Shown piece by piece: positions 2,869 to 64,000 of a DNA stretch of 64,000 bases. The notes beneath the pieces are model-generated. The model worked only from the letters and a program-made list of their open reading frames with translations. It had not been told where the DNA came from and ran no database searches. The stretch's first letter is position 1; each line of letters opens with the position of its first letter. This DNA comes from Rebecca billardiae RCC1528 (taxonomy: Eukaryota > Protista > Haptophyta), in assembly GCA_965240325.2 (NCBI GenBank), contig OZ251227.1, positions 1,736,001 to 1,800,000 on the forward strand, in the 5' to 3' direction. Made by a program: the position numbers and the translations under genes.

Positions 2869-4427
2869 AATGATGATCGCGAAAAGTTGCGCGTGAGGTG
2901 ACGACGATCCAACGGCAAAGTGCCACCGGCACATGAGTCGGTCTCTGCGTGGAGTGCGGGTGCGGCGGCGTCGGTGCGGCGGAGGCGGAGGCGGAGGCGT
3001 CGGGGGCGGCGGCTGAAGGGAGCGAGGGCGATGGTGGCGGCGCAGTCGAGGGAGGTGCGCCGAATGGCATGTCCGTCCTCACCCTCGCCGGCGGCGGCCG
3101 CCCGCGTGCCGCCGCCGCGGCGGCTCGGCTTGCTGGCGACCGACTGCTGCCGCAGGTGATGCGACCGGACGCGCCGATGCGGCGCGCGTACGAGGTGGCG
3201 CAGCTGCTGCTCGAGGTGATCGCGCACTGCGCGCTCGACCCCGCCGAGCCCGCCGCATGCGCCACCCTCTCCGCAGGCTGCGTCGCAAATCTGACCTATC
3301 CGGTCGACAGGCGTCTGCACTCGGACTGCGCGGCGGCGCCGGCGCGAGGCCGAGCGCGCGAGCCTGGGCGGCGGCGGGCGCGCGGCGGGGCATGTGCTGC
3401 CCGAGAGGCTGGCGCACTCGCCCAGCGCCGCCGCGCACACCGCCGCCGACCTCGCGCGCACGACCTCCGTCAACTCCTCCGTCAGCGGCGGAGAGCGCGT
3501 CGCGTCGCCGCCCACGCGGCTGGTCGCTGCCGCCCAGCCGGTTCGTCATCCGAGCGCAGTCGCCCGCCGGCGGCGGCGGGGCGGATCGGAGGCGGCGGCG
3601 TCGGAGGGCGGCGTCGGAGGGCGGCGTCGGAGGGCGGCGTCGGAGGGCGGAGCGGAGGGCGGCGGCGCGCCGCCGCCGCCGCCCGACGGGCTGCCGCGAT
3701 CGCCGCTCGCCGCCGCGATCGCCGCCGCCGACGGCAGCGGCGGCGCGCGGGCGCCCGCAGCGCGCGCCGGGCCGGTCGCCGCCTGGGTGGTGGGACCGCC
3801 GCTGGGGGGTGGGGCGGGCGGAGGAGATGGCGGTGGCGAAGGAGGAAGCGGTGGTGGACGTGGACGTCACGCAGTCCGGGCTGCACTGGCTCATCCACCT
3901 CCTCTCCGCACTCGACCCGCCGCCGTCACCGACGGCGCAGCAGCTGGCGGCGGCGCGACGGACGGTGGCGGGCGCGGCCGCGGCCGAAGCGGGCGCGCGC
4001 CGCGCGCGCCGCTGCGGTGGCGTGGAGCGGCGGGAGCTGAGCGGCGCGCTGCTGCACACGCAGTCACGCTGCAGCGCAGCTGGCGGCGGCGCGACGGACG
4101 GTGGCGGGCGCGGCCGCGGCCGAGGCGGGCGAGCGCCGCGCGCGCCGCTGCGGCGGCGTGGAGCGGCGGGAGCTGAGCGGCGCGCTGCTGCACACGCAGT
4201 CACGCTGCGCTTACGTGCTGCAGACGCTGTGCGAGCGCGCCACCGCCGACGCCGTCGCGCCGCCGCTGCCCCCGCCGCACCGGCACCGTCTGACCGTCCG
4301 ACCGTGTCGTCACAAGCCGCGGCTGCTGCTCACATTCACAAGCTGCGTGATGGTGACTAGCACTAGCCACTAGGGCCGTGCGCCCTCAACTTCGTTGTTC
4401 ACTACCCGAAGATCGGCGTAGCCGATC
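2869..4427 (+). mobile_element. Hairpin-ended dispersed repeat family 2, copy A (Helitron/Helitron2-like non-autonomous, carrying a degenerate gene fragment)
   Basis: Direct-orientation copy of 60257-61689. Similarity stops right after the hairpin GATCGGC-GTA-GCCGATC (4411-4427). No TSD seen. Internal frameshifted protein-like sequence. Confidence 0.65.
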
Positions 4428-26128: not shown

Positions 26129-27517
26129 TCATAGTGGTCCGGGTCGTGGCGGCAGATACTCGTTGTGGGCGGCGCGCCTGCTCTCCTCGTCGTCGTACGA
26201 GTAGGCGACGGTGCTTCCGCCGCCCACCAGCCGGCCGCCGCCGTCCTCGGTGCTGTGGCGCGTCGAGCGGCGGGAGCGGTGCGGGTGCTCGCGCGCACCG
26301 CCCACCGAGTCGTCGCGCTCGGGCTCGAGCTCCCACAGCGCGGGCTCGTCCAGCCCGCCGAGCATGCGGCGCTGCTCCTCGACGGGCAGCCGGCGGCGGA
26401 GCTGCACGTGCGCGGCGCACGCCACGTGCACGTGGATCATCTCGCCGAGCACGAGCTTCGTCGTGATCAGCGCGAGCGGCAGGATGCACCACGCCTTGTC
26501 CTCGAAGAAGGGCAGCACCGGCCACACCGCCGCGATCGCGGCGACGAGCGCGGCGACGAGGGAGAAGGCGTTGGCGAGGGCGAAGGTGCGCGCGAGCAGC
26601 TCGTCGTGCGCGCTGCACAGGCTGGCGATGCCGAGCAGCGGCGACGCGAGCGCCGCGAGCGGCGGCAGCAGCACGACGCACTCGAACGCCGCCTCGTCGA
26701 TCTGCCAGAACTCGATGAGCAGCAGCACCAGCACGAGCAGCTCGCACGCGAGCAGCGCGCTCACCATCGGCAGCACGGCCGAGAAGCCGACGCGCTGCCC
26801 GACGCGGAGCGGCTTGTTGTGGAAGAGCCACCAGGCGCACAGCTGGCCGACCCACGTGAAGCTCGCCGTGCAGCGCAGCCGCTGCCCCAGCCACGCCTCG
26901 AACGCGCGGTGCCCCTGCCCGTGCAGGTCCTCGCCGCCGTACGGCAGCGGCCCGCGCGCGGGCTCAGCGTCGCGCAGCGCGAGCAGCCCGAGCTTGTACG
27001 CGCCCGTGCGCGGCTCCTGCATGAAGCGCGCCATGTGGAGCACGCACGGCGGCGCGCCCGCGAGCGCGCCGCCGTCCGCGTCCACCTCCGCCTGCGCGTC
27101 CGCCGCCTCGAGCCTCGGCCGCTGCAGCCCCTCGAGCGCGCGGATCAGGTCCTGCAGCAGCCTGGACGCGTGCGCGGCGGGCGCGCGCCGGTCGAGCCGC
27201 CAGAGCATCGCGTTCACGTTGGTGATGGCCGCGGCCCACTCCGAGCCGAAGGCGGCGGAGAAGAGCGAGGCGACGAGCGTGTCCGCCGGGTCGAGCCGCC
27301 ACGGCGACCAGTACGTCCCGTCTCCACCGAAGAGGAGCACGAGGGGCGCCCCGCCCGAGAGCAGCGGCGCCAGCTCGTCGGAGTCGGCGCCGCCGTCCGA
27401 CGCGGCACCCACCGCCTCGCTCGCGAGCGCGCTCGTGCGGCGCAGGTCGTCGCAGCCGGCGGCGTCGGCGCGCAGCCGGGCGCTGGCGCTGAGCGCGCCC
27501 GGGTGCAGCTCCGCGCC

Positions 27518-27564
<47 letters not shown>

Positions 27565-29138
27565 GCTTGGCCATGGGCGGCATGGCGTGCAGCAGCGGCA
27601 GCCGCTGCACGCCGCAGCCGGTGTGCGTGCCCACGCGCCTCGACAGCGAGTCGAGCTCGTCGGTGGGCGAGTACGAGCGCTCGCCGGGGCCGGCGCCGCC
27701 GTTGCCCCCCGGCCCGCCGTACCCGTCGGCGCCGTCGCCCGCGCTCACGTGGTGCACGTCGATGTACGCCAGGTTGAGGTCGTACCCGGCCGCGCAGCGG
27801 AGCGTGCCCGAGAGCGCGCGCACGCGCACCGAGCGAATGAAGGCGCCGTCGTACTCTCCACCGACGAAACGGCTCAGCCGGGCGAGGCGCTTGGCCTGGC
27901 ACCAGCGGAGGAAGGGCAGGCGCGCGGGCTGGGCCGGCCACAGGCAGAACAGCGTCCACTCCTCCCACGGCTCCCAGCTCGTCAGCTCGACGCAGCGCTC
28001 GGCGAAGGACGCATACTCTGCGGCCTTGATGTGTGCGCGCAGGTGCGCCGGCAGCGGCGGCAGCCGCCACGGCGACGCGGGCGTGTTCGAGCCGCAGAGG
28101 TAGATGCGGCGCATGCGCGCGGAGACGTCGCGGAGCACCTCGATGCGCGGGTCGGACGAGCGCGGGTCCATCTTCGCCGACATGTGCAGCGCCGCCGCGC
28201 GCGCCTCGGCGGACGCGGAGATGAGCTGCGAGGGCGCGGGCCGGGTGGGCGTGTGCGCCATGCGGCCGCGCGAGCACTTGCGCACGGTGTGAGGCCGTCC
28301 GGAGGCGGAGCCGAGGCGGTCGGCGCGGGTGGGCGAGCTGAGCGGCGGCGCGCCGCCGGGCTCGGCGCACGCGCCATTCCCCGCGCCCACCGCGCCGCCG
28401 CCGCCGAGCGCGCCCGCCCCGAGCAGCAGCGCCTGCTCCCCGCCCGCGCCCGCGCCGCCCGGCTCCGCGTCGTCGTCCGGCGCGTCCACAAGCGGCCCGC
28501 CGTCGGCGAAGGAGGAGATGGCGGAGGGCTGCTGCAGCTTGAGCAGCGGCTCGTCGACGTCGGCGGCGCGGAGCAGCCGCGACAGCCGCGCGAACACGTT
28601 GCACCGCTCCGGGCAGCACAGCAGGCACGTCGCGCGCCGCGCGCGCCCCTTGGCGCGCGCCGCGCCGCCGCGGCCGCGGCCCGCTCGCACTCCGAGCCTC
28701 GGGCGCATCAGCACGCCGTACACGACGAGCTCGACGACGACGACGCAGCACACGGCGAGCATGACGACCGAGGCGCCACCGATCAGCCGCAGCCACCGCT
28801 CCACCTTCGTCGTGCACTCGGGCCACAGCAGCACGCCCTTGGGGCAGCGGTACGAGCAGTTGGCGTGCGCCTCGCCCAGGCGCGTGTACTCGTGGCGGCG
28901 CGGCGCGTTCTCGCACGGCCGGCAGAAGCCCGGGCCGTGCTCGGGCTTGTACGTGCCGCTGGGGCACGGGCGGCAGAGCGTGCCGTAGGACCCCGGCAGG
29001 CAGTCCGGCCCGGCCACCATCCCCATGTCCCCGTCGCTCGCGCCGCCCCAGCCGCGGCCGCCGCGCACGTGCATCTGCGTCGTGTTGAAGCACGAGCCGT
29101 CAAACAGCGCGCGCGCGCCCGGCGTCAGGCGGATGTAC

Positions 29139-29169
<31 letters not shown>

Positions 29170-31993
29170 CGTTGGGTACGGCGGCGGCGCCGAGGCGGAC
29201 GAGCCCGCCGGCGCCAGCGCCGAGGCGCGCCAGCCCGCCCGCGTCGAGGCGCGCCAGCCCGAGCGCGCTCGGCGCCGCCCCGCCGTCGGCGTCCGCCGCG
29301 TCCGCCGCGGGCGCGGGCGTGGCGGCGGCCATGCTGCTGCCCGCCGACACCTCGGCCGGCGTCGGCGCGGTGCCAAACCCAAAGGCGTCGTCGGCGTCGT
29401 CGGCGAAGTCGCCCTCGTCGGGGCTCTGGCGGACGCCTCGCGAGGCACCGTCGCCGCCCATCGCCGAGATCGAGCCGACGCCGCGCAGCTCCGACGTCTC
29501 GATGAGGACGGAGCCGCCCGCGCCGCCGCCCGAGCCGAGCGGCGAGGTCGGCACGCCGCTCGGCGCAATCTGCTGGCCGATGCTGTTGCCGAGGAAGAGG
29601 CCCGCGTCCTGCCCGTTGGCGGAGAGCATGCCGTCCACGTCGATGCGCGGGGCGGAGAGGTGGAGCAGCCCGCCGCCCGAGCCGCCGTACTCGCCGCCGC
29701 CGCCCGAGCCGACGAAGGACGGCCAGAGCATGTCGCCATACCGGCCGCCCCCAACCGACACGGAGCCGTTCACGCGCGCGCCGTCGCCGCCGCGCCCGGC
29801 GTGCCCGCCGCCGCCGCCGCCCGAGCCGATGGTGGTGGCGCCGAGGCCGATGCCCTGGTTGGCGGCGCAGCCGAACTCGGAGGCGGTGAGGGTCCCGCGC
29901 ACGCTCAGCGTGCGCGCCGAGCACGCCAGCACCGCCGCGCCCACCACCGCGCCGTCGGGCTCGACCACAAACGCCTGATCAACAAACACAGACACGGCGT
30001 ACCGCGAGGCGTTGCCCACGCTCGAGCGCATCGCGGCGCAGGGCAGCCGGTGGGACTCGGCGTTGACGTTCGACGTGGGCGACGCGAGCACGGGCGACGA
30101 GGGCGACGCGGCGCCGAGCCGCCGGCCGTCTTCCGCCTCGGACCGACCCTGCGCGCGCGCGGCGCGCGCGCCGGGCCGCGTGGCTGCGCCGCGCGCGAGC
30201 GGCGCGCTGGGCGGCTCGCGCGCGGCGCCGTCCCACGCGCGGCCGCCATCCTCGGCGCTCGCGTCGAACCACGCGGCGTCGGGCTCGACGTCGGTGGTCG
30301 CGGGCTCGGCGGGCTGCGTGGGGAGCGAGTGCTCCTCCGCCTCCGCCTCCAGCGCGCCATCCAGCTCCTCCCAGCCCGCCGGCAAGAAGCCGCGCGCGCC
30401 GCGACCGCCACTGCCGTCCGCGCCGTCGTCCGCGCCCAGCCCAAGCGCCGACCTGACAAGCGACAGCACGGGGCCTGCGACGGGCTTGGCGAAGAGCGCG
30501 CACTCGTGGCGCATCTCCGAGGCGCTCGACGCCTGCAGCTTGCCCGCGACGAGCAGCACGCGCGCCGAGATCCACATGTTCGACGCGGCGAGGATGCCCA
30601 GCATCTCGATGGCGATCTCGCCGCCGGAGGACACGAGGACCATCTCTCCCTGCGACGTGAGCCGGCCGCCGATCGTCGCGACCGTCGACGCGGCGATGAG
30701 CAGCGGCACGCTGGAGGGCGGGCGCGGGCACGCGGTGCCGTCGATCGGGCCCTGCGAGCTCGCCACCGGCGCGCCCGCCGGCGCCCCCCCGGCCGAGACG
30801 TACGACGAGCGGTCGAGCGTGAACGTCGCGACGCAGATCGAGAGGACCGTGCCGCGCACGGACGAGCCCTGCCGCACGGCAAATTGTTCGGCCACGATGG
30901 CGGTCGTGTCGGCGGACCAGTCGATGTGGCCGGAGAGGAGGTTGATCTGGTCGGCGCGCAGCTCGAAGCCGTCCGACGCCACCTGCGCGTGCCACGGCCG
31001 CACGAGCGCGCCGCCCTGCACGCTCAGCTCGTGCATCGGCGACATGGGCGAGGGCTGGCCGGCGGTGACCCCGTCAGTGATCGAGCAGCCGCACTCGGTC
31101 TGCTTGCGCGCGTTGTCGCAGTACAGCGTCTTGGTCGCGGCGAGGAAGACGGTGCCCGCGCCGGCTGTGTGGTGGCCCACGCCGCCCGAGACGTCATACG
31201 ACAGCCAGCGCGACGGCGCCGCGTGCGAGTACAGCCGGCCGCCGCCGCCCGAGCCTGCGACGCTGACCGCGCCGCCGGCGCCACCGCGCGCCGACACCAT
31301 GCCAGAGCCGTTGAGCATCGTCGAGCGAAGGACGACGCCGCCGCCGGCGCCGCCGCCGGCGTCGCCGTCGCCCGCGCCGCCGTCCGCCGTGAGCAGCCCG
31401 CGCACCTCGATCACCTGCGCCGTCAGCCGGATCAGCCCGCCGCCGGGCCCACCGACGCGCAGGTCGCCCGCCAGGCCGGGCGAGCCGACAGTGATCACGT
31501 TGGCGTCCGTGCCGTCGCCGTACGCCTCGCCGCCCTGCGTGACGCCGGTGCACGGGCTGCCCACGCCGCCATGGCCACCGCCACCGCTCGGACCCGGCGG
31601 GCGCGCGAGCGACAGCCGATGCCAGACGGATGCGTTCACGCGGATCGACGCGTTGGCGCCGATCACGATCGATTTGCCCGCGCGCACGTCGACCGTGGTC
31701 GCGCGCACGCTCGAGTTGCCCGACAGCGCGACGGCTTCGCGCGCGCCGAGCGTGAGCGTGCACGGCGGGTTGTCCGGATCGATCGCGCATCTCATCGACG
31801 CGTTCTCAAACTCGAGGCGGTCATACGTCGACTCAAACGTGCAGTCGCCACCCACGACAACGTCGCGCGTGATCACGCAGGTTGTGTTCGGCACGCCGCT
31901 CACGTTGAGCTCGCACGGGAGGTGCGGGCAGCGCGAGATGCTGCCACCCACTAGGAGCGCCGCGAGCGCCCCCAGCAGCCCGCCCACTGCCAT
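26129..31993 (-). CDS. Large Gly-rich membrane protein (1954 aa) with an ephrin-receptor-like Cys-rich module; resembles the plant At4g32920/At5g11700-type family
   Basis: Signal peptide; repeated GGGHGGxG/GSGGG/GGGAGGS motifs; CLPGSYGTLCRPCPSGTYK...CSYRC; TM; RIYLCGSNTPASPWRL; several C-terminal TM helices. Confidence 0.85.
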
Positions 31994-48108: not shown

Positions 48109-48310
48109 TACGTGTCAAAGCGGAGGAAGGGCGCTGATTTGAGATTCCAGGATGCAACGGCCCGGACTGAGAAGATGACGAAACCAAGCGGTCGTCGTCG
48201 TCGCCCGGACCAAGTCGGGCAAACTCGCAAAGGCGCGTGTTGAACACGCATCAGTCCTCGATCAGGAAGTCGGCCGGGCGCGGAGGGACTTGCGCCCGCC
48301 GCCGCTTGCC

Positions 48311-50611
48311 ATGCGTGCCTACGCGCACTCGGTACTCAACTCCGCCAAGTTCAGTGCGGCCGCGGACTCCCTGCACGCGCAGACCGATCCCAATTCGCAT
48401 CCTGCCCTCCACGAGCGCGTTGAGCAGCTCCGGAGCGGGCAGGAGCGCGCGCGGCTCTTGCACATCCGAAAGGTGCTGGCCAAGCTGCCGAGCAAGGAGG
48501 CGTCGTTGTCCGACGCACTCATGCACGAGCTGCTATCGCTTCACGAAGTGATCCTGCTGCTCGTCGTCGACCCGTCTCCTCAGAGCGGCGTCGCCGTGAA
48601 GCTCGCTGCGGCCGATGTCGCCAAGTTTGTGCGCGTGCTGCTGCACTGCGTCGCCCGGCTCGAGCGCAAGCAGCAGCTGCAGGGCAGCTTCGCGCTTTCG
48701 TGGGCGAGTAAGGCCTCGTGGCACGTGATGCTGCTCTCGCACCTCGTCGAGATCTACCGCGACGCCCAGCACGTCCAGGCTGCGCGCGAGGCTGTACTCG
48801 CCGATTCGGCAGCGCTGGACACGCTGGCCGCCGTGATCGCAGGGGCGTCTGACGTGCCCGAGGCGGATCACGACAATGTGTACATCGCGGTGACGCTTGC
48901 CACTGACTTCGTGAAATGGCTGCTCGAAGGGCAGCCCAAAGCGGCCGAGATCTCGCGGCGGTGCGCGGAGCACGTGCACCTGCTGAGCGCGCTTGGCGGC
49001 GTGCTCGTCCAGAGTGCGCTGCACAGCTGGGCGCCGACGACGTGGGTGGTGGCCGCCCGGCTCGCGGCCCTCGACGTGCTTGGCACGCTGGCACAATGCT
49101 TGCCTGGCTCCAACCGGGTCGAGAGGGTCTCAATGCACGCGCTCGAGTGCTTCGTGTCCGCCAGAGTCCCGCATACGCTCGCGCTGTGCGCGCGCTCGTA
49201 CCGCGAGCCCCTGCTGGTGCACCCGGATTCGGCGGAGGCGGGATCGCCCTTCCCGTGGCTGGAGGCGGGCATCCCGCCGGCGAAGGTGCGCAACCCGCTG
49301 CGTGGCCTCGAAGGGAACGAGCTCGAGGCGCAACGTGTGATGGAGATCCTGACACTTGCCGACCTCACCACTACGTTCCTCACAGCGCTGCAGAGAGCCG
49401 ACGATTGGCACACGCCGATTGCGCCGCATGTGCACGCGGCATGGCACGAGTTGCTGCAGCCCAAGCACGTGCGGCACTTCCTACCCGTCGTCGGGCGGCT
49501 GATCACGCCGCCGCCCGGGCTGGATGACACTGCCAACATGCGCTCCTCGGGCTTGCGCCTCCTGGGCGCGCTTCTGTTTGCCCTCGATCGCAACATCAGC
49601 GTGGTCGGCCAGCTGTGGCCGACGTTGGACGGTGCGCAGGGGGCGCCCTCTGAGAATGACGAGGACGGCTTCTACTTCCCGCGTGACGAGGGCTTTACGG
49701 AGGACCTTCCGCGGCAAGCGCGCAATGCCTTGCACCTCCAGTTCGAGAAATCGATGTGGCTACTCGTCGACTGCAGCGGCGAGCCGCTCGTGCGCAGGCT
49801 GAAGCAGTGCCTACGCAATCGGGCGGTGCGGGCGCGAGTGCCCGGCGCTGGGACTTTCATCGACACGCAGCTGCAGCGGCTCATCGATTGCTGCCATATG
49901 GTGACTCGCGATATGGGCAGGGGCGTGGACGGGTCCATCCTCCACGTCCGCGTCGTGCGCGAGCTCGCGGCCAAGCCCGCTTGGAAAATGGGCGCAGACG
50001 CCCGGGAGTGGATGGAGGAGGACGAGTACGACAAGCTCCGGCCAGGCGATGCCAGCTCGCTCGGCCACGCGGCAACGCTCTGCTCGGCACCTGACTGCCT
50101 GCGTGCGGCGCCGAGCTCGGGCGAGCCGACGAGTGAGCAGCAGGGGGATGCTGCGGGCAGCGGCAGCGCGCTCGAGTCGCACGTGCCCCTGCGGCTGTGC
50201 GGGCGCTGCAGGCGCGCCGCATACTGCTCGCGCGAGTGCCAAGAGCGGCACTGGAAGGCGCACAAGCCGGCATGCAAGCAGCACGTGCGCGAGGCGGCGC
50301 AGCAGGAAGCCAGTGGAGCTGGCGGCGCCGGCGCGCCCGCGCATACGTTGGATGCGACCCTGTACCGCATGCGGATGGCTGACGCGGACAGCCGCTTTCG
50401 TGAGCTTGATGGTGCCCCGGCTGTGTGCCGGCACATGCTGACGGCCCTCATGCCCATGATGCAGGTGGATCTGTTGGAGAAAGAGGGGCTCTCGGAGGCG
50501 GCCGCCATACGACGGGTCTTCGCCATGTTCCGCGAGCTCGCTGCCAGGCAGCGCGCAGCCCAGCTCGTCCCGACCGGTTGCAGTAGTATCATCGCGTCAG
50601 TGTCGGAATGA
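48311..50611 (+). CDS. MYND zinc-finger protein with a helical N-terminal region
   Basis: CSAPDC...LCGRCRRAAYCSRECQERHWKAHKPAC. Confidence 0.9.
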   Translation: MRAYAHSVLNSAKFSAAADSLHAQTDPNSHPALHERVEQLRSGQERARLLHIRKVLAKLPSKEASLSDALMHELLSLHEVILLLVVDPSPQSGVAVKLAAADVAKFVRVLLHCVARLERKQQLQGSFALSWASKASWHVMLLSHLVEIYRDAQHVQAAREAVLADSAALDTLAAVIAGASDVPEADHDNVYIAVTLATDFVKWLLEGQPKAAEISRRCAEHVHLLSALGGVLVQSALHSWAPTTWVVAARLAALDVLGTLAQCLPGSNRVERVSMHALECFVSARVPHTLALCARSYREPLLVHPDSAEAGSPFPWLEAGIPPAKVRNPLRGLEGNELEAQRVMEILTLADLTTTFLTALQRADDWHTPIAPHVHAAWHELLQPKHVRHFLPVVGRLITPPPGLDDTANMRSSGLRLLGALLFALDRNISVVGQLWPTLDGAQGAPSENDEDGFYFPRDEGFTEDLPRQARNALHLQFEKSMWLLVDCSGEPLVRRLKQCLRNRAVRARVPGAGTFIDTQLQRLIDCCHMVTRDMGRGVDGSILHVRVVRELAAKPAWKMGADAREWMEEDEYDKLRPGDASSLGHAATLCSAPDCLRAAPSSGEPTSEQQGDAAGSGSALESHVPLRLCGRCRRAAYCSRECQERHWKAHKPACKQHVREAAQQEASGAGGAGAPAHTLDATLYRMRMADADSRFRELDGAPAVCRHMLTALMPMMQVDLLEKEGLSEAAAIRRVFAMFRELAARQRAAQLVPTGCSSIIASVSE

Positions 50612-51660: not shown

Positions 51661-54600
51661 TCAATGATCATGAGAGCTGTGTGCGTCTCTTATTCTTGTT
51701 ATCCATAAGCACCACGCGCTCAGCTGGTTGCCGCTGTGTGCACAGCGGGGCACGCCGAGGGAAGGGGAAGCGCCGAGAGGCGAGCGCGGTAGTCGCGCGG
51801 GGTGGAGTGGGCAGTTTCAGCCCACGCCGCTGCGCACCGCTCACCGCCCACCGCACTGCACCGCACCGCCACACTGCGCACGCGCCGCCGCACCGGCCGT
51901 GCGCGCCGCGCGCCGTGCCCGTGGGGCGGCGCGCGCGGCGCGGCGCGGCGCGCGGCGGCCGCTGCCGCAGCCTCGCGCCACGGCGCTGCTGCGGCGCCGT
52001 GCGCGGGTGCTCGCACGAGCGCGCGATGCGCACGGCGCGCGAGCCCTCCCCACCCCCCTTCCGCCCGCGCCGCGCGCCAACCCCCTCGCCACGCCGTGCA
52101 TGCGCGTACCTCAGCCTGAGCTCCCGCAGCCTGCAGGTGCGGAGCGCCTCTGCCAGCGCTGTGCCGGAGACGTCCGTCAGCTGGTTGTGGCTGTGTGCAC
52201 AGCGGGGCACGCCGAGGGGAGGGGAAGCGCGGAGAGGCGAGCGAGGCGGTCGCGCGGGGTGGGTTGGGCAGTATCAGCCCACGCCGCTGCGCACCGCGCG
52301 CCGCCCACCGCACCGCACCGCCACGCTGCGCACGCGCCGCCGCAACGGCCGCGCGCGCCGCCCGCCGTGGGGCGGCGCGCGCGCCGCGGCGCGCGGCCGC
52401 GCGCGCCGGGCGCGGCCGTAGCTTCATGCGACGGCGCTGCTGCGGCGCGGCGTGCGGGTGCCCACCCTGCACACGGCGCGCGACCCCCTCCCTCCCACTC
52501 CAACGCACGCGCCGCCCGCCGCCCCCCTCGCCACGCCGTGCATGCGCGTACCTCAGGTCGAGCTGCTCCAGATGGTTCGTCAGGTAGAGCTCCTTTGCCA
52601 GCGCTGTGCCGGAGACGTCCGTCAGCTGGTTGTGGCTGTGTGCACAGCGGGGCACGCCGAGGGGAGGGGAAGCGCGGAGAGGCGAGCGAGGCGGTCGCGC
52701 GGGGTGGGTTGGGCAGTATCAGCCCACGCCGCTGCGCACCGCGCGCCGCCCACCGCACCGCACCGCCACGCTGCGCACGCGCCGCCGCAACGGCCGCGCG
52801 CGCCGCCCGCCGTGGGGCGGCGCGCGCGCCGCGGCGCGCGGCCGCGCGCGCCGGGCGCGGCCGTAGCTTCATGCGACGGCGCTGCTGCGGCGCGGCGTGC
52901 GGGTGCCCACCCTGCACACGGCGCGCGACCCCCTCCCTCCCACTCCAACGCACGCGCCGCCCGCCGCCCCCCTCGCCACGCCGTGCGTGCGCGTACCTCA
53001 GCCTGAGCTCCCGCAGCCTGCAGGTGCGGAGCGCCTCTGCCAGCGCTGTGCTGGAGACGTCCGTCAGCTGGTTGTGGCTGTGTGCACAGCGGGGCACGCC
53101 GAGGGGAGGGGAAGCGCGGAGAGGCGAGCGAGGCGGTCGCGCGGGGTGGGTTGGGCAGTATCAGCCCACGCCGCTGCGCACCGCGCGCCGCCCACCGCAC
53201 CGCACCGCCACGCTGCGCACGCGCCGCCGCAACGGCCGCGCACGCCGCCCGCCGTGGGGCGGCGCGCGCGCCGCGGCGCGCGGCCGCGCGCGCCGGGCGC
53301 GGCCGCAGCTTCATGCGACGGCGCTGCTGCGGCGCGGCGTGCGGGTGCCCACCCTGCACACGGCGCGCGACCCCCTCCCTCCCACTCCAACGCACGCGCC
53401 GCCCGCCGCCCCCCTCGCCACGCCGTGCATGCGCGTACCTCAGGTCGAGCTGCTTCAGATGGTTCGTCAGGTAGAGCGCCTTTGCCAGCGCTGTGCCGGA
53501 GACGTCCGTCAGCTGGTTGTGGCTGTGTGCACAGCGGAGGCACGCCGAGGGGAGGGGAAGCGCGGAGAGGCGAGCGCGAGGATCGCACGGGGTGGGGTCG
53601 ACGGTGTCAGCCCACGCCGCACCGCACCGCACCGCACTGCACCGCACCGCCACGCTGCATACGCACCGCCACACCGGCCGCGCGCGCCGCGCGCCGCGGT
53701 GCGCGCGTGGCACGGCCGCAGCTTCGTGCGACGGCGCTGCTGTGACGCGGCGGGCAGGTGCCCACCCTGCACACGGCGCACGACCCGTCCTTTTTCCCTC
53801 CGCCTCACGCGCCTCGCGCCGCCCGCCCCCCTCGCCGCGCCATGCGTGCGCGTACCTCAGCCTGAGCTCCCACAGCCTGCAGGTGCGGAGCGCCTCTGCC
53901 AGCGCTGTGCCGGAGACGTCCGTCAGCTTGCTGGAGCTGTGTGCACAGCGAAGGCACGCCGAGGGGAGGGGAAGCGCGGAGAGGCGAGCGAGGCGGTCGC
54001 GCGGGGTGGGTTGGGCAGTGTCAGCCCACGCCGCTGCGCACCTCGCGCCGCCCACCGCACCGCACCGCCACGCTGCGCACGCGCCGCCGCAACGGCCGCG
54101 CGCGCCGCCCGCCGTGGGGCGGCGCGCGCGCCGCGGCGCGCGCGCCGGGCGCGGCCGCAGCTTAATGCGACGGCGCTGCTGCGGCGCGGCGTGCGGGTGC
54201 CCACCCTGCACACGGCGCGCGACCCCCTCCCTCCCACTCCAACGCACGCGCCGCCCGCCGCCCCCCTCGCCACGCCGTGCATGCGCGTACCTCAGGCTGA
54301 GCCTCCGCAGCGAGGTGTTGGTGCGGAGCACCTCCGCCAGCGCTGTGCCGGAGACGTCCGTCAGCTGGTTGTGGCTGTGTGCACAGCGGAGGCACGCCAA
54401 GGGAAGGGGAAGCGCGGAGAGGCGAGCACAGAGGTCGCGCGGGGTGGGGGCGGTGGTGTCAGCCCACGCCGCACCGCACCACGCGCCACGCCGCGCACCG
54501 CACCGCACCGCTGCGCAGGCGCCGCCACACGCCGAGGGGCGGCGCGCGCGCCGCGCGGCGAGGGCGCCGGCCGCGGCCGCAGCCTCGCGCCACGGCGCAG

Positions 54601-57600
54601 CTGCGGCGCCGTGCGTGGGTGCTCGCACGTGCGCGCGATGCGCACGGCGCGCGACCCGCCCTTCCCTCACTCCACCTCACGCGCCACCCGCCTCCCGCCT
54701 CGCCGCGCCGTGCGTGCGCCTACCCCAGGTAGAGCGTCTGCTCCAGCCAGGTGTTGGTGCGGAGCACTTCCGCCAGCGCTGTGCCGGAGACGTCCGTCAG
54801 CTGGTTGTGGCTGTGTGCACAGCGGGGCACGCCGAGGGAAGGGGAAGCGCGGAGAGGCGAGCGCGGCGGTCGCGCGGGATGGGGTGGGCAGTGTCAGCCC
54901 ACGCCGCTGCGCACCATGCATCGCGCACCGCACCGCACTGCACCGCTGCGCGCCGCCACACGCCAAGGGGCGGCGCGCGCGCCGCGCGGCGAACGCGCCG
55001 GGCGCGGCCGCAGCCTCGCGCGACGGCGCTGCTGCGGCGCCGTGCACGGGTGCTCGCACGTGCGCGCGATGCACACGGCGCGCGACCCCCACCCAAACCC
55101 CCCAACTCCACCGCACGCGCCGCGCGCCGCCCCCTCGCCGCGCCGTGCGTGCGCGTACCTAAGGTCGAGCTCCCACCTCAGGTCGATATCCCACAGCGAG
55201 GTGCTCAGGTCGAGCTCCCACAGCGAGGTGTTGGTGCGGAGCGCCTCCTCCAGCGCTGTGCCGGAGACGTCCGTCAGCTGGTTGTGGCTGTGTGCACAGC
55301 GGGGCACGCCGAGGGAAGGGGAAGCGCCGAGAGGCGAGCGCGATGGTTGCACGGGGTGGAATGGGTGGTGTGAGTCCAAGCCGCTGCGCACCACGCGCCG
55401 CGCCGCGCACCGCACCGCCCACCGCACTGCACCGCCACGCTGCGCACGCGCCGCAAAATCGGCCGCGCGCGCCGCCCGCCGTGGGGCGGCGCGCGCTGCC
55501 GCAGCCTCGCGCGACGGCGCTGCTGCGGCGCCGTGCGCGGGTGCTCGCACGTGCGCGCAATGTGCACGGCGCGCGAGCCTCCCTCCCACCACTCCATCGC
55601 CCGCGTCGCGCGCCCTCCGCCTCGCCCCACCGTGCGTGCGCGTACCTCAGGCTGAGCCTCCGAAGCGAGGTGTTGGTGCGGAGCGCCTCCCCCAGCGCTG
55701 AGACGTCCGTCAGCTGGTTGCCGCTGTGTGCACAGCGGGGGCACGCAGAGGGGAGAGGAAGCGCGGAGAGGCGAGCGCGGTGATCGCGCGGGGTGGGGTG
55801 GGCAGTGTCAGTCCACGTCGCTGCGCACCACGCACCGCCCACCGCACCGCACCGCCACGCTGCGCACGCGCCGCCGCGCCGGCCGCGCGCACCGCCCGCC
55901 GTGGGGTGACGCGCGATGCGGGGCGCGCGTCGGGCGCGGCCGCAGCCTCGTGCGACGGTGCTGCTGCGGCGCCGTGCGCGGGTGCACACGCGGGTGCAAG
56001 CGCTGCACACGGCGCGCGACACGTCCTTCCCCCACTCCGTCGCACGCGCCGCGCGCCGCCCCCCTCGCCCCACAGTGCGTGCGCGTACTTCAGGTGGAAA
56101 TTCTCCAGGCGGCAGCTGTCCGCCTGCAGCGCCTGCGACAGCAGCCGCACACACTCGTTGCCCACGCCCGTCTCGTCGAGATCGAGCGTTGTCAGCTTGG
56201 CACTGTGCGCAACGAGGTGCGCAACCGCCTGCGCGTGCTCCGCCACGTCCGTCCACGTCCGACACTTCACCGTCTTCTGCAGCACCATCAGCACATCTGC
56301 TGAGCCCACGTTCGCATAGCGCGCGAGCGCCTCGAGCTGCTCCACAGAGGCGCTGACTGGAGGCGGCGCCGTGCGCGGCTGCTCCGCTGCTGAGCGAACG
56401 GGCGGCGCCGCGTGCGGCGCGACCTGCTCCGCAGCGGCGTGGAAGGGTGGCGCCGCCGCGTGCGGCTGCTCCGCAGCGGCGCAGACGGGCGGCGCCGCCG
56501 CGCGCGGCTGCTCCGCAGCGGCGCGGACGGGCGGCGCCGCACGCGGCGCCGCCTCTGCACCCGCCTTGCGCCTCGCCTCCTCCGCAGCCGCGCGCTCTGC
56601 CTCTGCAGCCGCCGTGCGCCCCTCGCTGACTGGCCGCTCGTCACCCCCCGGCTCCATCATCGAGCGCAGTTCGATCCTCGCGGAAGCAGCCTGCGGTCGC
56701 AGTGCGGCAGAGTCCGACCACATGCCCGCGAGCAGCTCGTGCAGGGCCTGCTCGTGGTGGTGCACAGGCGCGCTGAGCCTCGGCCGCGCGCCTTGGATGA
56801 TCGCGTTCGTGAGCACGAACGGATCGTGGTTGGCGACGTTGCTGAAGAGCGTCTCGCCGGAAAGCATGTACGCGAGCACGATGCTGGCGCTGAACACATC
56901 GGATGGTGGAGAAGGCTTCGTCGCGCCACGCGCAACCTCAGGTGCCATGTAGCCAGCTGTGCCGCGCGGGCCAACGCTCCCGCTCGACGACGACAGGCGC
57001 AGCCCTTGCTCGCGCATCGTCTCAGATATCAAGGCGAGGCCGAAATCGGCGAGCTTGGCCACGCCGCCAGCATAGATGAGCACGTTCTCCGGCTTGATGT
57101 CACCGTGCGTCACGCCGTGCCTGTGCAGGAATGCAAGCGCACACATGATCTCGCCCGCAATTCGGAAGAAGGTGCGCGTCACGCCCGGCAGCGCAACGTC
57201 AGACCCGAACGCGGCCGTGCGAGCGGCTCCGCTCCCCAGGAGCGATCGCAGGGATCCGTGCTCGGCGAGCTCGAGCACCAGCCAGACCTCGCCATCGTCG
57301 GCATGGTTGACCACACCGAGAAGCTGCACGATGTGCGGATGGCGCAGCCGACTGAGCGCGTCGAGCTCGCGCTTGGCAGTGCGTGCTGTCGCGTCGTCGT
57401 CGGTCGGCACCTGCTTCACGGCGACCTCGAGCCCCTCAGGCTGAAGGGAAGCTCTGCGGACACACCCAAATGCCCCGCGGCCGAGCGGCCGGCCTTGCGC
57501 GATGGAGAGGTCGGCGACCTCAAACGTGCGCGTGTGCGCTGACGACCAGGGGTCCTGCGCCTGGTCGCGCGCCGCCTCCCACTCGCGAACGGCATCTCGC

Positions 57601-57851
57601 ATCGCCACGTTGACAGCAAGGCCGAAGCACTCGGTCTCCTCGTTCGCGAGAGGCTGTCGGCATATGGGGCACGTGACGCACGTCGCATCGTCATCATCGT
57701 CATCATCGCTACGGCGGGAGCGAACCCTCCTGCGGTGCTCTTCTATCGCAGCACGCTCGAACGTGTGCCCGCACGGCGTGGTTATCGGCTCCTCCGGCGG
57801 CTCGAGCGTCAGCGGGCAGATGCACGGTGCTGTCGGTGCGAGTCGGGCCAT
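51661..57851 (-). CDS. U-box / Ser-Thr kinase / RI-like LRR protein, 11 exons (57851-56089, 55723-55646, 55287-55159, 54810-54724, 54374-54291, 53936-53856, 53522-53439, 53077-52997, 52635-52552, 52190-52110, 51733-51661), ~874 aa
   Basis: U-box CPLTLE...CGHTFERAAI...CPICRQPL...VNVAMRDAVREW; kinase GRGAFG, VAVK, HGDIKPEN, DFG, APE. Then exons bounded by CACACAG| and |GTA, each encoding xNQLTDVSGTALAxxLxxxxxLxxLxL. The summed exon length of 2625 nt is an open frame ending in TGA. Confidence 0.88.
51734..56088 (-). repeat. Tandem array of ten intron(+LRR exon) units, period ~417-487 bp
   Basis: Recurring CGTCCGTCAGCTGGTTGTGGCTGTGTGCACAGCGG. Introns 52191-52551, 52636-52996 and 53078-53438 are each 361 bp and differ at only a few positions. 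Confidence 0.95.
56360..56560 (-). repeat. Coding minisatellite (~42 nt; AAPPVxAAAEQPx) in the kinase-LRR linker
   Basis: About five imperfect copies in the translated exon 1. Confidence 0.85.
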
Positions 57852-61732: not shown

Positions 61733-64000
61733 CTACTTTGCGGCGCTGGTATCGGCCGACGCCGCGCCGTCTGCCGAGTCGGCGGGCGCTGCTCCGAGCG
61801 AGCGGTCGAGCAGCTGCGTCAACCGGCCGAGCATCGGCCGCGCGTCGTCGAGCATGCCCGCGCCGATGAGCGCGTTGTCAAACAGCTGCTGCGCGACGAG
61901 AGTCGCGAGCTCCGCGTCCGCCGTGCGCATGTGCGCCAGCTTCTTAATCACCGGGTGCGAGGGGTTGAGCTCGAGCTTCTGCTTGGGCATCTCGGGCCGC
62001 TCCGCCTGGTTGACCATCGACATGAAGCGGCGCATCGACGCGGACATGCCCTCCTCGTTGATCACCGCGGGCGAGTCGACGAGGCGCGAGGACATGGCGA
62101 CGCCCGAGACCTTGCCCGCGAGCGCCTCGTCGGCCATCCACTTGGCCAGCGCGTCCGCCTCCTCCGCGGGCAGCGCCGGCGCCTTGTCCTCGTCGGGCAG
62201 CGTGAGGTCGGCGTTGGTCGCGGACGTGAGGATCTTGCCCTCGTACTGGCCCGCATTCTGCATGACGAAATCGTCGATCTCCTGGAAGCAGTAGAGCACC
62301 TCCATCTTGCGCTTGCGGAAGACCTCCATGTACGCGCTGCTCTCCGCTGCGGCGCGCGAGCTCGTCACGAGGTAGTACACCTTGTCCCCCTGCTCGGGCG
62401 GCATGCGCGAGATGTAGTCGTCGAGCGAGGTGACCTCGCCCGCGTCGAGCGTGGACGTCTCAAAGCGCAGCAGCTGCATGATCTCCTTCTGGTGCATGAA
62501 GTCGGTGCACACGCCCTCCTTGAAGAAGCGCTGGAACTCCGAGTAGAAGGCGAGGTACCCCCCCGGGTCCTTCTTCCCCTCCTCGGCGAACCACTTGAGC
62601 AGCCGCGACGAGAGCACGCCGTTCATCCGGCGCAGCAGCGCCGAGTCCTGCATCGACTCGCGCGAGATGTTGAGCGGGATGTCCTCCGAGTCGACCACGC
62701 CCACGATGAAGCGCATCCACTGCGGCAGGATGTGAGCCGAGTTGGCGGTGATCAGCACCTTGCGCGAGTAGAGCGAGACGCACGGCTCCTGCTGCCCCAT
62801 CCCCATCTTCTCCTTGTGCTGCTGCGGCACGTAGAAGACCGACTTGATCGCGATCGGCGCGTCCGTCTGGAACTGCAGCGTGTACCTGCGCGCGCACGGC
62901 CGAGCGACGCGGAGGGAGGGCAGGAAGGAGGGCAACGCGGCGGCGCGGCGGCCGCGGCGCTGCTGAGCCCAGGGGCGGGATCGGCGGCGCGGTGCGCTGC
63001 GCCGCGCGCGAGCGCGCGCGCGCGCGTGCACACGCACATCGGGCTGTCGTACGCGTGCGACAGGTGTCGGTACAGCTCCTCGTGCTCCTCGGTGCTCACG
63101 TCCTTCTTGGCCTTCATCCACACGGGCTCGACGTTGTTGATGCGCTCGCCGTGCAGCAGCACGGGGTACGTGACGAAGGAGGAGTGCTTGCGGATGATGC
63201 GCTCGAGGTTGTAGCGCGAGGCGAATTCGGCGGCGCCCTCCTTCAGCGTGATCTCGATCTTCGTGCCCGTGCGCACGTTCGACGCCTTGGCGAGCGAGTA
63301 GCTGCCGTCCCCAGTCGAGGTCCAGCACCAGCCCGCGCCCTCCGCGTCCTCGCTGCCCGAGTGGCGCGAGAACACGCGCACCGAGTCCGCGACCATGAAG
63401 ACGGAGTAGAAGCCGACGCCGAAGCGGCCGATGATGCTCGACGCCGCCTCGTTCACCGTCTCCGCCGAGTCGTCGCCCTTGAGCTCGTTCAGGAAGGCCT
63501 GAGACCCTGCGCGGCGGCGGCGCCCAGTGCGCGCGGCGGCAGCGCGCTCAGCGCGCCGCCTCGCTGCGCACCGCGGTGGGCGGTCGGGCGGAGCGGCACG
63601 CGGGCGCACCTGAGCGCGCGATGCAGCCTAGGTTCTCGACGAGGTCCTCCTTCGTCATCCCCACGCCCGAGTCCTGGATGACGAGCAGCCGCTTCTCAGA
63701 GTCGCACGTCACCTTCACCTCGAGCGGCGCGTCCGGTTGCGCGTCACTCGCGCTCGCCGACAGGAGCATCGCGTGCCGCCGCTTCTCGAGCGCGTCCGAG
63801 GCGTTTGACACGAGCTCGCGGATGAACACCTCCTTGTCCGTGTACAGCGACTTGGCCACGATCTCGAGTAGCTGCTTCGTCTCGGCCTCAAACTTGTGGG
63901 AGACCGTCTCGCCCTCGACGGCCTCGGCGGGCTCCGCGGGCTCCGCGGGCTTGTCGTCCGCTGCGCCGTCGTCCTTCTTGTCGATAACGCCGCTCACCAT
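61733..64000 (-). CDS. TRAP1: Mitochondrial-type Hsp90 (TRAP1/HtpG-like); exons >=64000-63610, 63506-63038, 62885-61733; 5' end may lie beyond the window
   Basis: FEAETKQLLEIVAKSLYTDKEVFIRELVSNASDALEK, IARSG|SQAF, IIGRFGVGFYS, GVVDSEDIPLNISRE, LELNPSHPVI. No MEEVD or KDEL. Two GT-AG introns (63507-63609, 62886-63037). Confidence 0.93.

Follow-up and report, generated by a model that had tools for sequence, protein, structure and literature searches.

The locus described here raises the question of whether a gene that encodes its leucine-rich repeats (LRRs) one per exon belongs to a variable, immune-like receptor system, as a first-pass annotation proposed, or owes its repeat tail to ordinary germline processes. 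The gene lies on the minus strand of a 64,000-nt stretch of the genome of Rebecca billardiae RCC1528 (Haptophyta; assembly GCA_965240325.2, contig OZ251227.1, positions 1,736,001–1,800,000), hereafter the window, to which all coordinates refer. Its coding region occupies positions 51661–57851 and, as predicted from splice motifs and the open spliced frame, comprises 11 exons that encode 874 amino acids, with a RING/U-box-like domain and a kinase domain followed by LRRs of the ribonuclease inhibitor (RI)-like type. The reading that we favor, with a probability of about 0.68, is that this is a nuclear gene whose LRR tail arose through germline tandem duplication and gene conversion, and that its product is a cytosolic LRR sensor or scaffold.

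Exon structure and the 442-bp tandem array

Exon borders were set by a script that searches the minus strand for the recurrent splice motifs. Exon 1 (56089–57851, 1763 nt) encodes the RING/U-box-like domain, the kinase, a linker, the LRR N-terminal cap, and the first LRR, as delimited with Pfam. The remaining exons, identified from splice motifs and translation, are all on the same strand: exon 2 (55646–55723, 78 nt; GNQLTDVSALGEALRTNTSLRRLSL), exon 3 (55159–55287, 129 nt), exon 4 (54724–54810, 87 nt; donor GTAGGC), exon 5 (54291–54374, 84 nt), exon 6 (53856–53936, 81 nt), exon 7 (53439–53522, 84 nt), exon 8 (52997–53077, 81 nt), exon 9 (52552–52635, 84 nt), exon 10 (52110–52190, 81 nt), and exon 11 (51661–51733). 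Exon 3 holds a single LRR plus internal 27-nt partial duplications (STSLWDIDLRWELDL) detected by Tandem Repeats Finder (TRF), exon 6 has SSK in place of HNQ, and exon 11 encodes a truncated LRR (GNQLS) and then a unique 19-aa tail, with a TGA that ends at 51661. The ten introns follow the canonical GT..AG arrangement, with GTA[C/G]GCGCA at every donor and GTGCACACAG at every acceptor, and each of the nine internal exons is in phase 2-2 with a length that is a multiple of three. Once joined, the 11 exons form a single 874-aa frame without a stop or frameshift, and the ATG at 57851 agrees with the N-termini of the homologs in a family alignment. The gene layout, exon sizes, and phases given by the first-pass annotation are confirmed by these splice motifs and by the open frame.

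The sole cross-check of the gene model, an indirect one, is the alignment with the homolog P0003 (699 aa), in which the finger, kinase, linker, and LRRs follow one another in the same order. The spliced model is colinear with P0003 over residues 9–732 (38% identity, E 2e-126), and the alignment passes uninterrupted through the predicted junction between exons 1 and 2 as well as the later junctions. The contig that encodes P0003 (2846 nt, Joint Genome Institute sample 3300016802) looks like a transcript because it is free of introns and has a 730-nt 3' region. Further support comes from the indels. At least four independent indels occurred in the exons (−6, +45, +3, and −3), and all four are multiples of three, for which the chance is (1/3)^4, or about 0.01. 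The introns (365, 358, 348, 349, 354, 333, 361, and 376 nt) show no such constraint, with lengths divisible by three in only three of the ten (348, 354, and 333 nt). The intron status of these segments is thus supported, because the unit lengths and seven of the ten introns are not multiples of three and the exon indels are all in frame. Read-through coding of the introns was rejected on the same count and because their translation yields Arg/Ala/Gly-rich junk.

The cassettes are tandem copies of a single intron-plus-exon unit, since TRF reports a period of 442 bp with 7.9–9.5 copies at 51720–56095 on the minus strand. Alignment of the units resolves approximately ten of them, each consisting of an intron (333–376 nt, GC content 0.77–0.82) and a single LRR exon. 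The GC content of the array is 0.77, and that of the window ranges from 0.60 to 0.78 per 2 kb. Introns of the older units have pairwise identities of 81–89%, and introns 5, 7, 8, and 9 are mutually 98–100% identical. The homogenized core lies at 52191–53438 (minus strand), where introns 7, 8, and 9 (361 nt each) differ at one to three sites; intron 5 (53937–54290, minus strand) belongs to the same class and is 98–99% identical to them. The exons among introns 7–9 alternate between two subtypes, a and b, and are only 77–79% identical. Between exons 8 and 9 (77% identity) there are approximately 18 differences in 13 codons, and the flanking introns have zero or one difference. A BLAST search with a single unit returns a near-identical block that begins at the first base of the intron and extends no further than exon nt 49. 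In a sliding profile across nine units, nucleotide diversity is approximately 0.12 in the introns and 0.04–0.06 in their last 50 nt. Within the exons it is 0.01–0.06 over the first 40 nt (0.01 at nt ~14–33) and 0.16–0.37 in the remainder, such that the final ~40 exon nt, including the LxxLxL strand, are two to three times as diverse as the introns. The introns are more conserved than the variable parts of the exons.

Point mutation after duplication is excluded as the cause of this inverted conservation by the differences between exons 8 and 9 beside near-identical introns. A simple duplication of an a/b dimer also fails, because it predicts that intron 8 should be like introns 6 and 10, and the identity observed is only 86–88%. 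Apart from the older C that it retains at alignment column 9, intron 8 is the same as intron 9, which is the pattern expected of a conversion tract. The simplest history would be that an a/b dimer was duplicated and intron 8 was then converted by its neighbor.

Two other explanations for the conserved introns were considered. A dispersed mobile intron ("introner") was rejected for the window, where no other copy of the unit was found and the exact end motifs occur nowhere else. Searches with the unit or the LRR peptide outside 51.7–56.1 kb returned only short, GC-rich chance matches across the 64 kb, and neither a paralogous array nor an orphan cassette was found within the window. Conserved RNA structure is also unsupported: despite minimum free energy z-scores of −2.6 and −1.8, the paired columns do not vary, and the covariation term is +2.06. 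The ends of the array introns are partly complementary (e.g., 52636–52996 on the minus strand, and the other nine introns) and resemble terminal inverted repeats. An end-to-end helix can form between the intron 5' GUACGCGCACGCACGGCG with its G-rich tract and, at the 3' end, the C/U-rich tract and CGGCGUGCC-CCGCUGUGCAC.

Under the favored reading, the tail would have grown by duplication of the 442-bp unit (intron plus LRR exon) through unequal crossing-over or slippage. The phase 2-2 borders common to all copies would have been inherited through this tandem duplication. Gene conversion would later have homogenized the intron and the first exon half in several units, and the last ~35–40 exon nt, which correspond to the helix end, the loop, and the LxxLxL strand, would have stayed different. 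The differences may have two sources, namely the alternation of 27- and 28-residue subtypes and the substitution of amino acids at those strand positions that should face a ligand. The LRR solenoid could bind a partner or ligand, or could be auto-inhibitory, and would in this way control the kinase and E3 ligase outputs, placing a receptor, an IRAK-like kinase, and an E3 within one chain. The sequence analysis shows the anatomy of the gene, its homology, the conservation of frame, and the pattern of duplication and homogenization, whereas ligand binding, enzymatic activity, and any immune role are properties that we infer for this protein.

Variation among the repeats and competing explanations

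The LRR domain begins at the end of exon 1 (56089–56331, minus strand), where the translation gives an N-terminal cap and a first LRR (LTTLDL ... LENFHL) that align with the start of the P0003 LRRs. The whole tail has approximately 11 RI/NLR-like repeats of 27–28 residues with the consensus xNQLTDVSGTALAEALxxxxxLxxLxL; HNQLTDVSGTALAEAL is the peptide of the repeat unit. The nine exon peptides (25–28 residues) have the RI-like period of 27–29 residues, with an LxxLxLxxNxL segment and an amphipathic helix. They align with the LRRs of P0003, which match Pfam LRR_4 (4e-12) and LRR_6 (3e-7); single LRR exons reach at best E 0.08 (LRR_4), being too short to score. A structural model of the P0003 LRR domain (residues 505–699; mean predicted local distance difference test score 81.7) has alternating strands and helices in an RI-like solenoid. 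Its best PDB matches are NOD2 (template modeling score 0.74), NLRP1/3/9, and ribonuclease inhibitor, with scores of up to 0.76. The LxxLxL segments are the strands of this model. In RI-like LRR geometry, the x positions of LxxLxL line the concave face.

Among the exon peptides, Leu occupies scaffold positions 16, 22, 25, and 27 without exception, and positions 17–21, 23, 24, and 26 hold two to four residues each. Subtype a (81 nt, ..ALRTCRLRELRL; exons 6, 8, and 10, with TCRLWELRL in exon 6) and subtype b (84 nt, ..LYLTNHLEQLDL; exons 7 and 9, with YLTNHLKQLDL in exon 7) differ in the length of the helix end and loop, and exons 6–10 alternate strictly as 81/84/81/84/81 nt. Variation at positions 17–21, where the one-residue difference in length also lies, is mainly between subtypes a and b. 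Ribonuclease-inhibitor-type LRRs likewise alternate A and B repeat subtypes, and the variation at positions 17–21 looks like this alternation rather than ligand contact. Differences at the strand x positions are found between recent copies of the same subtype (W/R and K/E). All of the peptides quoted in the first-pass annotation (TNTSLRRLSL, TNTSLWELDL, TNTWLEQTLYL, TCRLWELRL, TNHLKQLDL, TCRLRELRL, and TNHLEQLDL) are present. Its division of the exon into a near-invariant first half and a variable half also agrees with the diversity values (0.01–0.06 and 0.16–0.37, respectively), the variation lying in or just before LxxLxL. Its interpretation of the second half as receptor variability needs revision, because part of this variation is structural, with two subtypes of 27 and 28 residues that alternate in the manner of ribonuclease inhibitor.

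Over all pairs of units, the Nei-Gojobori proportions of nonsynonymous (pN) and synonymous (pS) differences are 0.070 and 0.074 in the constant half and 0.328 and 0.118 (ratio 2.8) in the variable half. Counted as minimal codon-state changes, the variable half has 19 nonsynonymous to 2 synonymous changes (binomial p = 0.066 against the site ratio), and the comparison of variable and constant halves gives a Fisher p of 0.56. Coming from a tiny sample of units that recombine and whose pairs are non-independent, these values are at most suggestive of positive selection on the variable half. They can also be read as neutral or structural variation only, in which two repeat subtypes and relaxed surface constraint are found in an LRR scaffold or auto-inhibitory domain that has a fixed partner and takes part in no arms race. 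This is a serious minority possibility: the strict 81/84 alternation of exons 6–10 fits two subtypes, the nonsynonymous excess is not significant, the two halves do not differ in the Fisher test, the pairs of units are not independent, and gene conversion alone can make introns seem more conserved than exons. However, pN in the variable half (0.33) exceeds both pS (0.12) and intron diversity (~0.12), and recent same-subtype copies differ solely by amino-acid changes, some of them (W/R and K/E) at the x positions of LxxLxL. Moreover, in four units the conversion tracts stop just short of the variable island, and selection against its homogenization is the easiest explanation. The same amino-acid changes, concentrated at strand positions with a pN/pS of 2.8, would also suit a receptor in which symmetric exons are alternatively included or skipped so that one gene yields a set of LRR isoforms that differ in their binding faces, and in which homogeneous introns would aid exon choice or frequent germline reshuffling. 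The nine phase 2-2 exons with lengths divisible by three and the near-identical, hence equally competent, splice sites would permit such use, and alternative splicing of an LRR exon array has been documented in Ectocarpus (PMC11378527). We nevertheless consider alternative exon choice unlikely here, since symmetric phase comes with tandem copying and is no evidence of use, the transcript-like contig of P0003 carries one full array, and skipping of a single exon would break the 27/28-residue alternation.

Several observations weigh against the reading of duplication and conversion in a functional gene. The exon junctions are sequence-based predictions, and a single assembly underlies the number of near-identical units. 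The order in which units were duplicated and converted is reconstructed rather than observed. The final repeat is truncated, ending after GNQLS where the array stops (~51720), and no C-terminal cap exon was found downstream of exon 11 by tblastn with the homolog C-terminus or by three-frame reading. The irregular partial duplications of exon 3 and the loss of HNQ in exon 6 could mean relaxed constraint. These features could be taken for a decaying or mis-assembled locus, in which a runaway minisatellite damages the gene or the copy number is an artifact; the truncated last repeat, the unique 19-aa tail, the missing cap, the irregular exon 3, and the difficulty of assembling the near-identical units 7–9 all point this way. 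The truncation, the missing cap, and the irregularities of exons 3 and 6 also fit an unstable array, and decay or artifact appears improbable because 20 of the 20 canonical splice sites are intact and the 11 exons have no stop or frameshift although the introns of the older units are 11–19% diverged. The indels of the exons also preserve the frame, the Leu scaffold does not vary, subtypes a and b alternate regularly, and a homolog has the same architecture. Least probable is somatic diversification, whether recombination-based or akin to that of variable lymphocyte receptors (VLRs). It has in its favor only the general resemblance of LRR cassettes with homogeneous flanks. VLR-type loci have an incomplete germline gene and flanking cassettes without splice sites, whereas this germline gene is complete and each cassette has its own splice sites. 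In addition, no orphan or inverted cassettes are present within the 64 kb, and no sign of an associated deaminase or recombinase was seen in the large open reading frames of the window. Nothing points to a dedicated mechanism for generating diversity at this locus.

In its strongest form, the immune interpretation would hold that pavlovophyte haptophytes evolved exon-cassette intracellular LRR sensors independently of brown algae and animals. The gene described here would then be complete for signaling, with introns and scaffold codons kept identical by conversion, ligand-contact codons driven apart by selection, and exons alternatively used to produce isoforms against viruses or parasites. 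Taken as a whole, this scenario is speculative and rather improbable.

N-terminal domains, homologs, and neighboring genes

The N-terminal finger (residues 11–94; 57570–57821, minus strand) was defined from Pfam matches and an alignment of 11 family members. Its Pfam scores are marginal relative to the curated cut-offs (zf-Nse 30.1/27 bits, zf-RING_UBOX 25.9/25.2, and U-box 23.3/21.4). Across the 11-member alignment, C12, C27, H29, C61, and C64 are conserved. Of the two zinc sites of a RING cross-brace, site 2 (C27, H29, C61, and C64) is retained and site 1 is lost, and a U-box-like motif, PxxTPCGHTFERxAIE, is present. A U-box has no zinc ligands and a RING has eight, whereas SP-RING-like domains keep site 2 only. 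Fingers in the family include both a true U-box (P0197, 44 bits) and, at the other extreme, a C3HC4 RING (P0198), and "U-box" appears acceptable at the superfamily level for a domain that may act on either ubiquitin or SUMO. An acidic D7 insert (RSRRSDDDDDDDATCVT) lies within the finger (57657–57719, minus strand; residues ~45–65) and is absent from all ten aligned homologs.

The Ser/Thr (TKL-like) kinase domain (residues 119–390; 56682–57497, minus strand) matches Pkinase (PF00069; E 7.7e-43) over profile positions 3–256 of 263. The kinase is apparently active, as predicted from a complete set of motifs, i.e., GRGAFG at 124, VAVK at 143, HGDIKPEN at 249, DFG at 269, and APE at 303. Matches to PDB sequences do not discriminate among kinase subfamilies, with CDK2, RIPK1, and TAK1 all at approximately 1e-19 to 1e-20. 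The HGD form of the catalytic motif makes the kinase non-RD, and the same form is found in all four close homologs. Non-RD kinases have been tied to innate immune signaling (PMC8463890), and the non-RD state may be a hint of such a role here. Between the kinase and the LRRs is an Ala/Pro-rich linker (AAAEQPRAAAPPV...; 56336–56545, minus strand), which TRF and translation trace to an in-frame 42-nt tandem repeat with 4.9 copies and which constitutes a second unstable repeat within the same gene. The protein is predicted to be cytosolic because no hydrophobic, transmembrane-like segment is found outside the kinase core. Pfam matches, catalytic motifs, and repeat period bear out the combination of a U-box-like domain, an intact kinase, and RI-like LRRs described in the first-pass annotation.

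The best named match of the protein is the hypothetical protein P0001 of Pavlovales sp. CCMP2436 (48% identity), which has the same finger and kinase and an ARM tail. An exhaustive profile-free search with the first 400 residues against 1.84 billion representatives found only about nine 50%-identity clusters that match from the finger onward. Family members (P0001, P0002, P0003, P0004, P0122, P0123, P0136, P0236, P0197, and P0198) share a C..CxH..CxxC finger and the HGD kinase with the gene in the window at 38–52% identity. Their tails consist of LRRs (P0003), ARM repeats, a PARP catalytic domain, a coiled coil, or nothing. As judged from these matches, they make up a small family in which a RING/U-box-kinase core is combined with C-terminal modules that have been exchanged between members. 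In P0003 (contig L001, positions 1720–2010), three identical 84-nt LRR units and one diverged unit are found, with a copy number that is uncertain in this short-read assembly. The identical units suggest that recent duplication of LRR units is recurrent in this family. A literature search found no paper on the RING/U-box-kinase core family, and a scan of metagenomes and metatranscriptomes with exon 1 returned only distant kinases (≤33% identity). The first-pass annotation had not recognized the architecture as one already described. The domain combination is indeed unusual, but it is not unique to the locus, given that P0003 has the same domain order.

Elsewhere in the window, an HSP90/TRAP1-like gene (61733–63328, minus strand) is 73% identical to its counterpart in Pavlovales sp. 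CCMP2436 and 70% identical to that in Diacronema lutheri, values in keeping with a pavlovophyte. Over 2333 nt, a Logan contig (L026, run ERR14847148) is 100% identical to the window and colinear with it, hence genomic. A convergent neighboring gene (48290–50611, plus strand) encodes 773 aa with a C-terminal MYND zinc finger (E 6e-10), and the 1-kb gap between this gene and the stop of the LRR gene is the least GC-rich part of the region. The window also contains a 136-bp tandem duplication at 3940–4208 (two copies, 97% identical) in a GC-rich stretch. At 26129–31993, approximately 5.9 kb is free of stops on both strands (1954 and 1929 aa), with a GC content of 0.74–0.78 and no Pfam match; this open stretch may be a large low-complexity gene or an effect of GC content.

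Comparison with known systems

Haptophytes rank among the major primary producers of the sea and suffer heavy attack by giant viruses. To our knowledge, almost nothing has been reported on how they recognize non-self. A protein with NLR/RI-type LRRs, a non-RD kinase, and an E3 domain is a concrete candidate for a haptophyte non-self sensor. The locus is also an example of concerted evolution that spares an island of 35–40 nt, with introns that are 99–100% identical beside exon ends that are about 40% different, and may be useful for weighing the limits of conversion tracts against selection. The broader proposal of a variable receptor system is not supported by a single locus with no orphan cassettes or paralogous units in the window and with an amino-acid excess that is not significant (p = 0.066).

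The closest parallel is found in the LRR-ROCO genes of the brown algae Ectocarpus and Saccharina, in which 72-nt phase-2 exons encode one LRR each and which are described as undergoing exon shuffling, alternative splicing, and, as judged by site models, selection on the concave face (PMC3341825; PMC11378527). The analogy with these Ectocarpus exon arrays drawn in the first-pass annotation is well founded. As in the ROCO type, the gene in the window has one repeat per exon, symmetric phase-2 borders, and tandem exon-plus-intron units that were recently duplicated, and both systems have concave-face variation in a cytosolic protein (predicted here) with an enzymatic signaling output. However, the brown-algal exons encode 24-residue LRRs, whereas those in the window are 81–87 nt long and encode RI-like LRRs. 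The brown-algal LRRs are N-terminal to a ROC-COR GTPase, whereas the LRRs described here are C-terminal to a RING/U-box-like domain and a kinase, and no Pfam match to a Roc or COR domain was found in exon 1. The brown-algal genes belong to a stramenopile lineage and make up a large family arranged in clusters, in which orphan and intronic exons occur, site-model selection is significant, and alternative splicing is documented. The gene in the window is a single haptophyte locus.

Vertebrate NOD/NLRC and NLRP proteins and ribonuclease inhibitor share with this protein the RI-type LRR solenoid, as modeled for P0003, and two alternating repeat subtypes. In their genes, an exon holds either a single repeat (84 nt) or a pair of repeats (171 nt). 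The effector module of vertebrate NLRs is NACHT or is absent, in contrast to the RING and kinase domains found here, and an identity of approximately 20–26% leaves common descent of the genes unsupported. The non-RD kinase IRAK/Pelle acts with the RING E3 TRAF6 or Pellino in innate immunity, LRSAM1 joins LRRs to a RING E3, and LRRK2 joins LRRs to a kinase. We know of none among these that has all three modules in the order seen in the window. Plant class IV PUBs (plant U-box proteins) combine a U-box with a Ser/Thr kinase, in a classification that lists no LRR class (PMC6489225). They resemble the gene in the window in having a U-box-type E3 domain and a kinase on one polypeptide, but differ in domain order and accessory domains, and the finger described here keeps one zinc site. 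Taken together, these comparisons separate what is already known from what is new. Building repeat domains from one-LRR exons has been published for brown-algal ROCO genes, whereas the combination of a RING/U-box-like domain, a non-RD kinase, and RI-like LRRs is new, as is the sharp pattern of homogenized introns beside variable islands.

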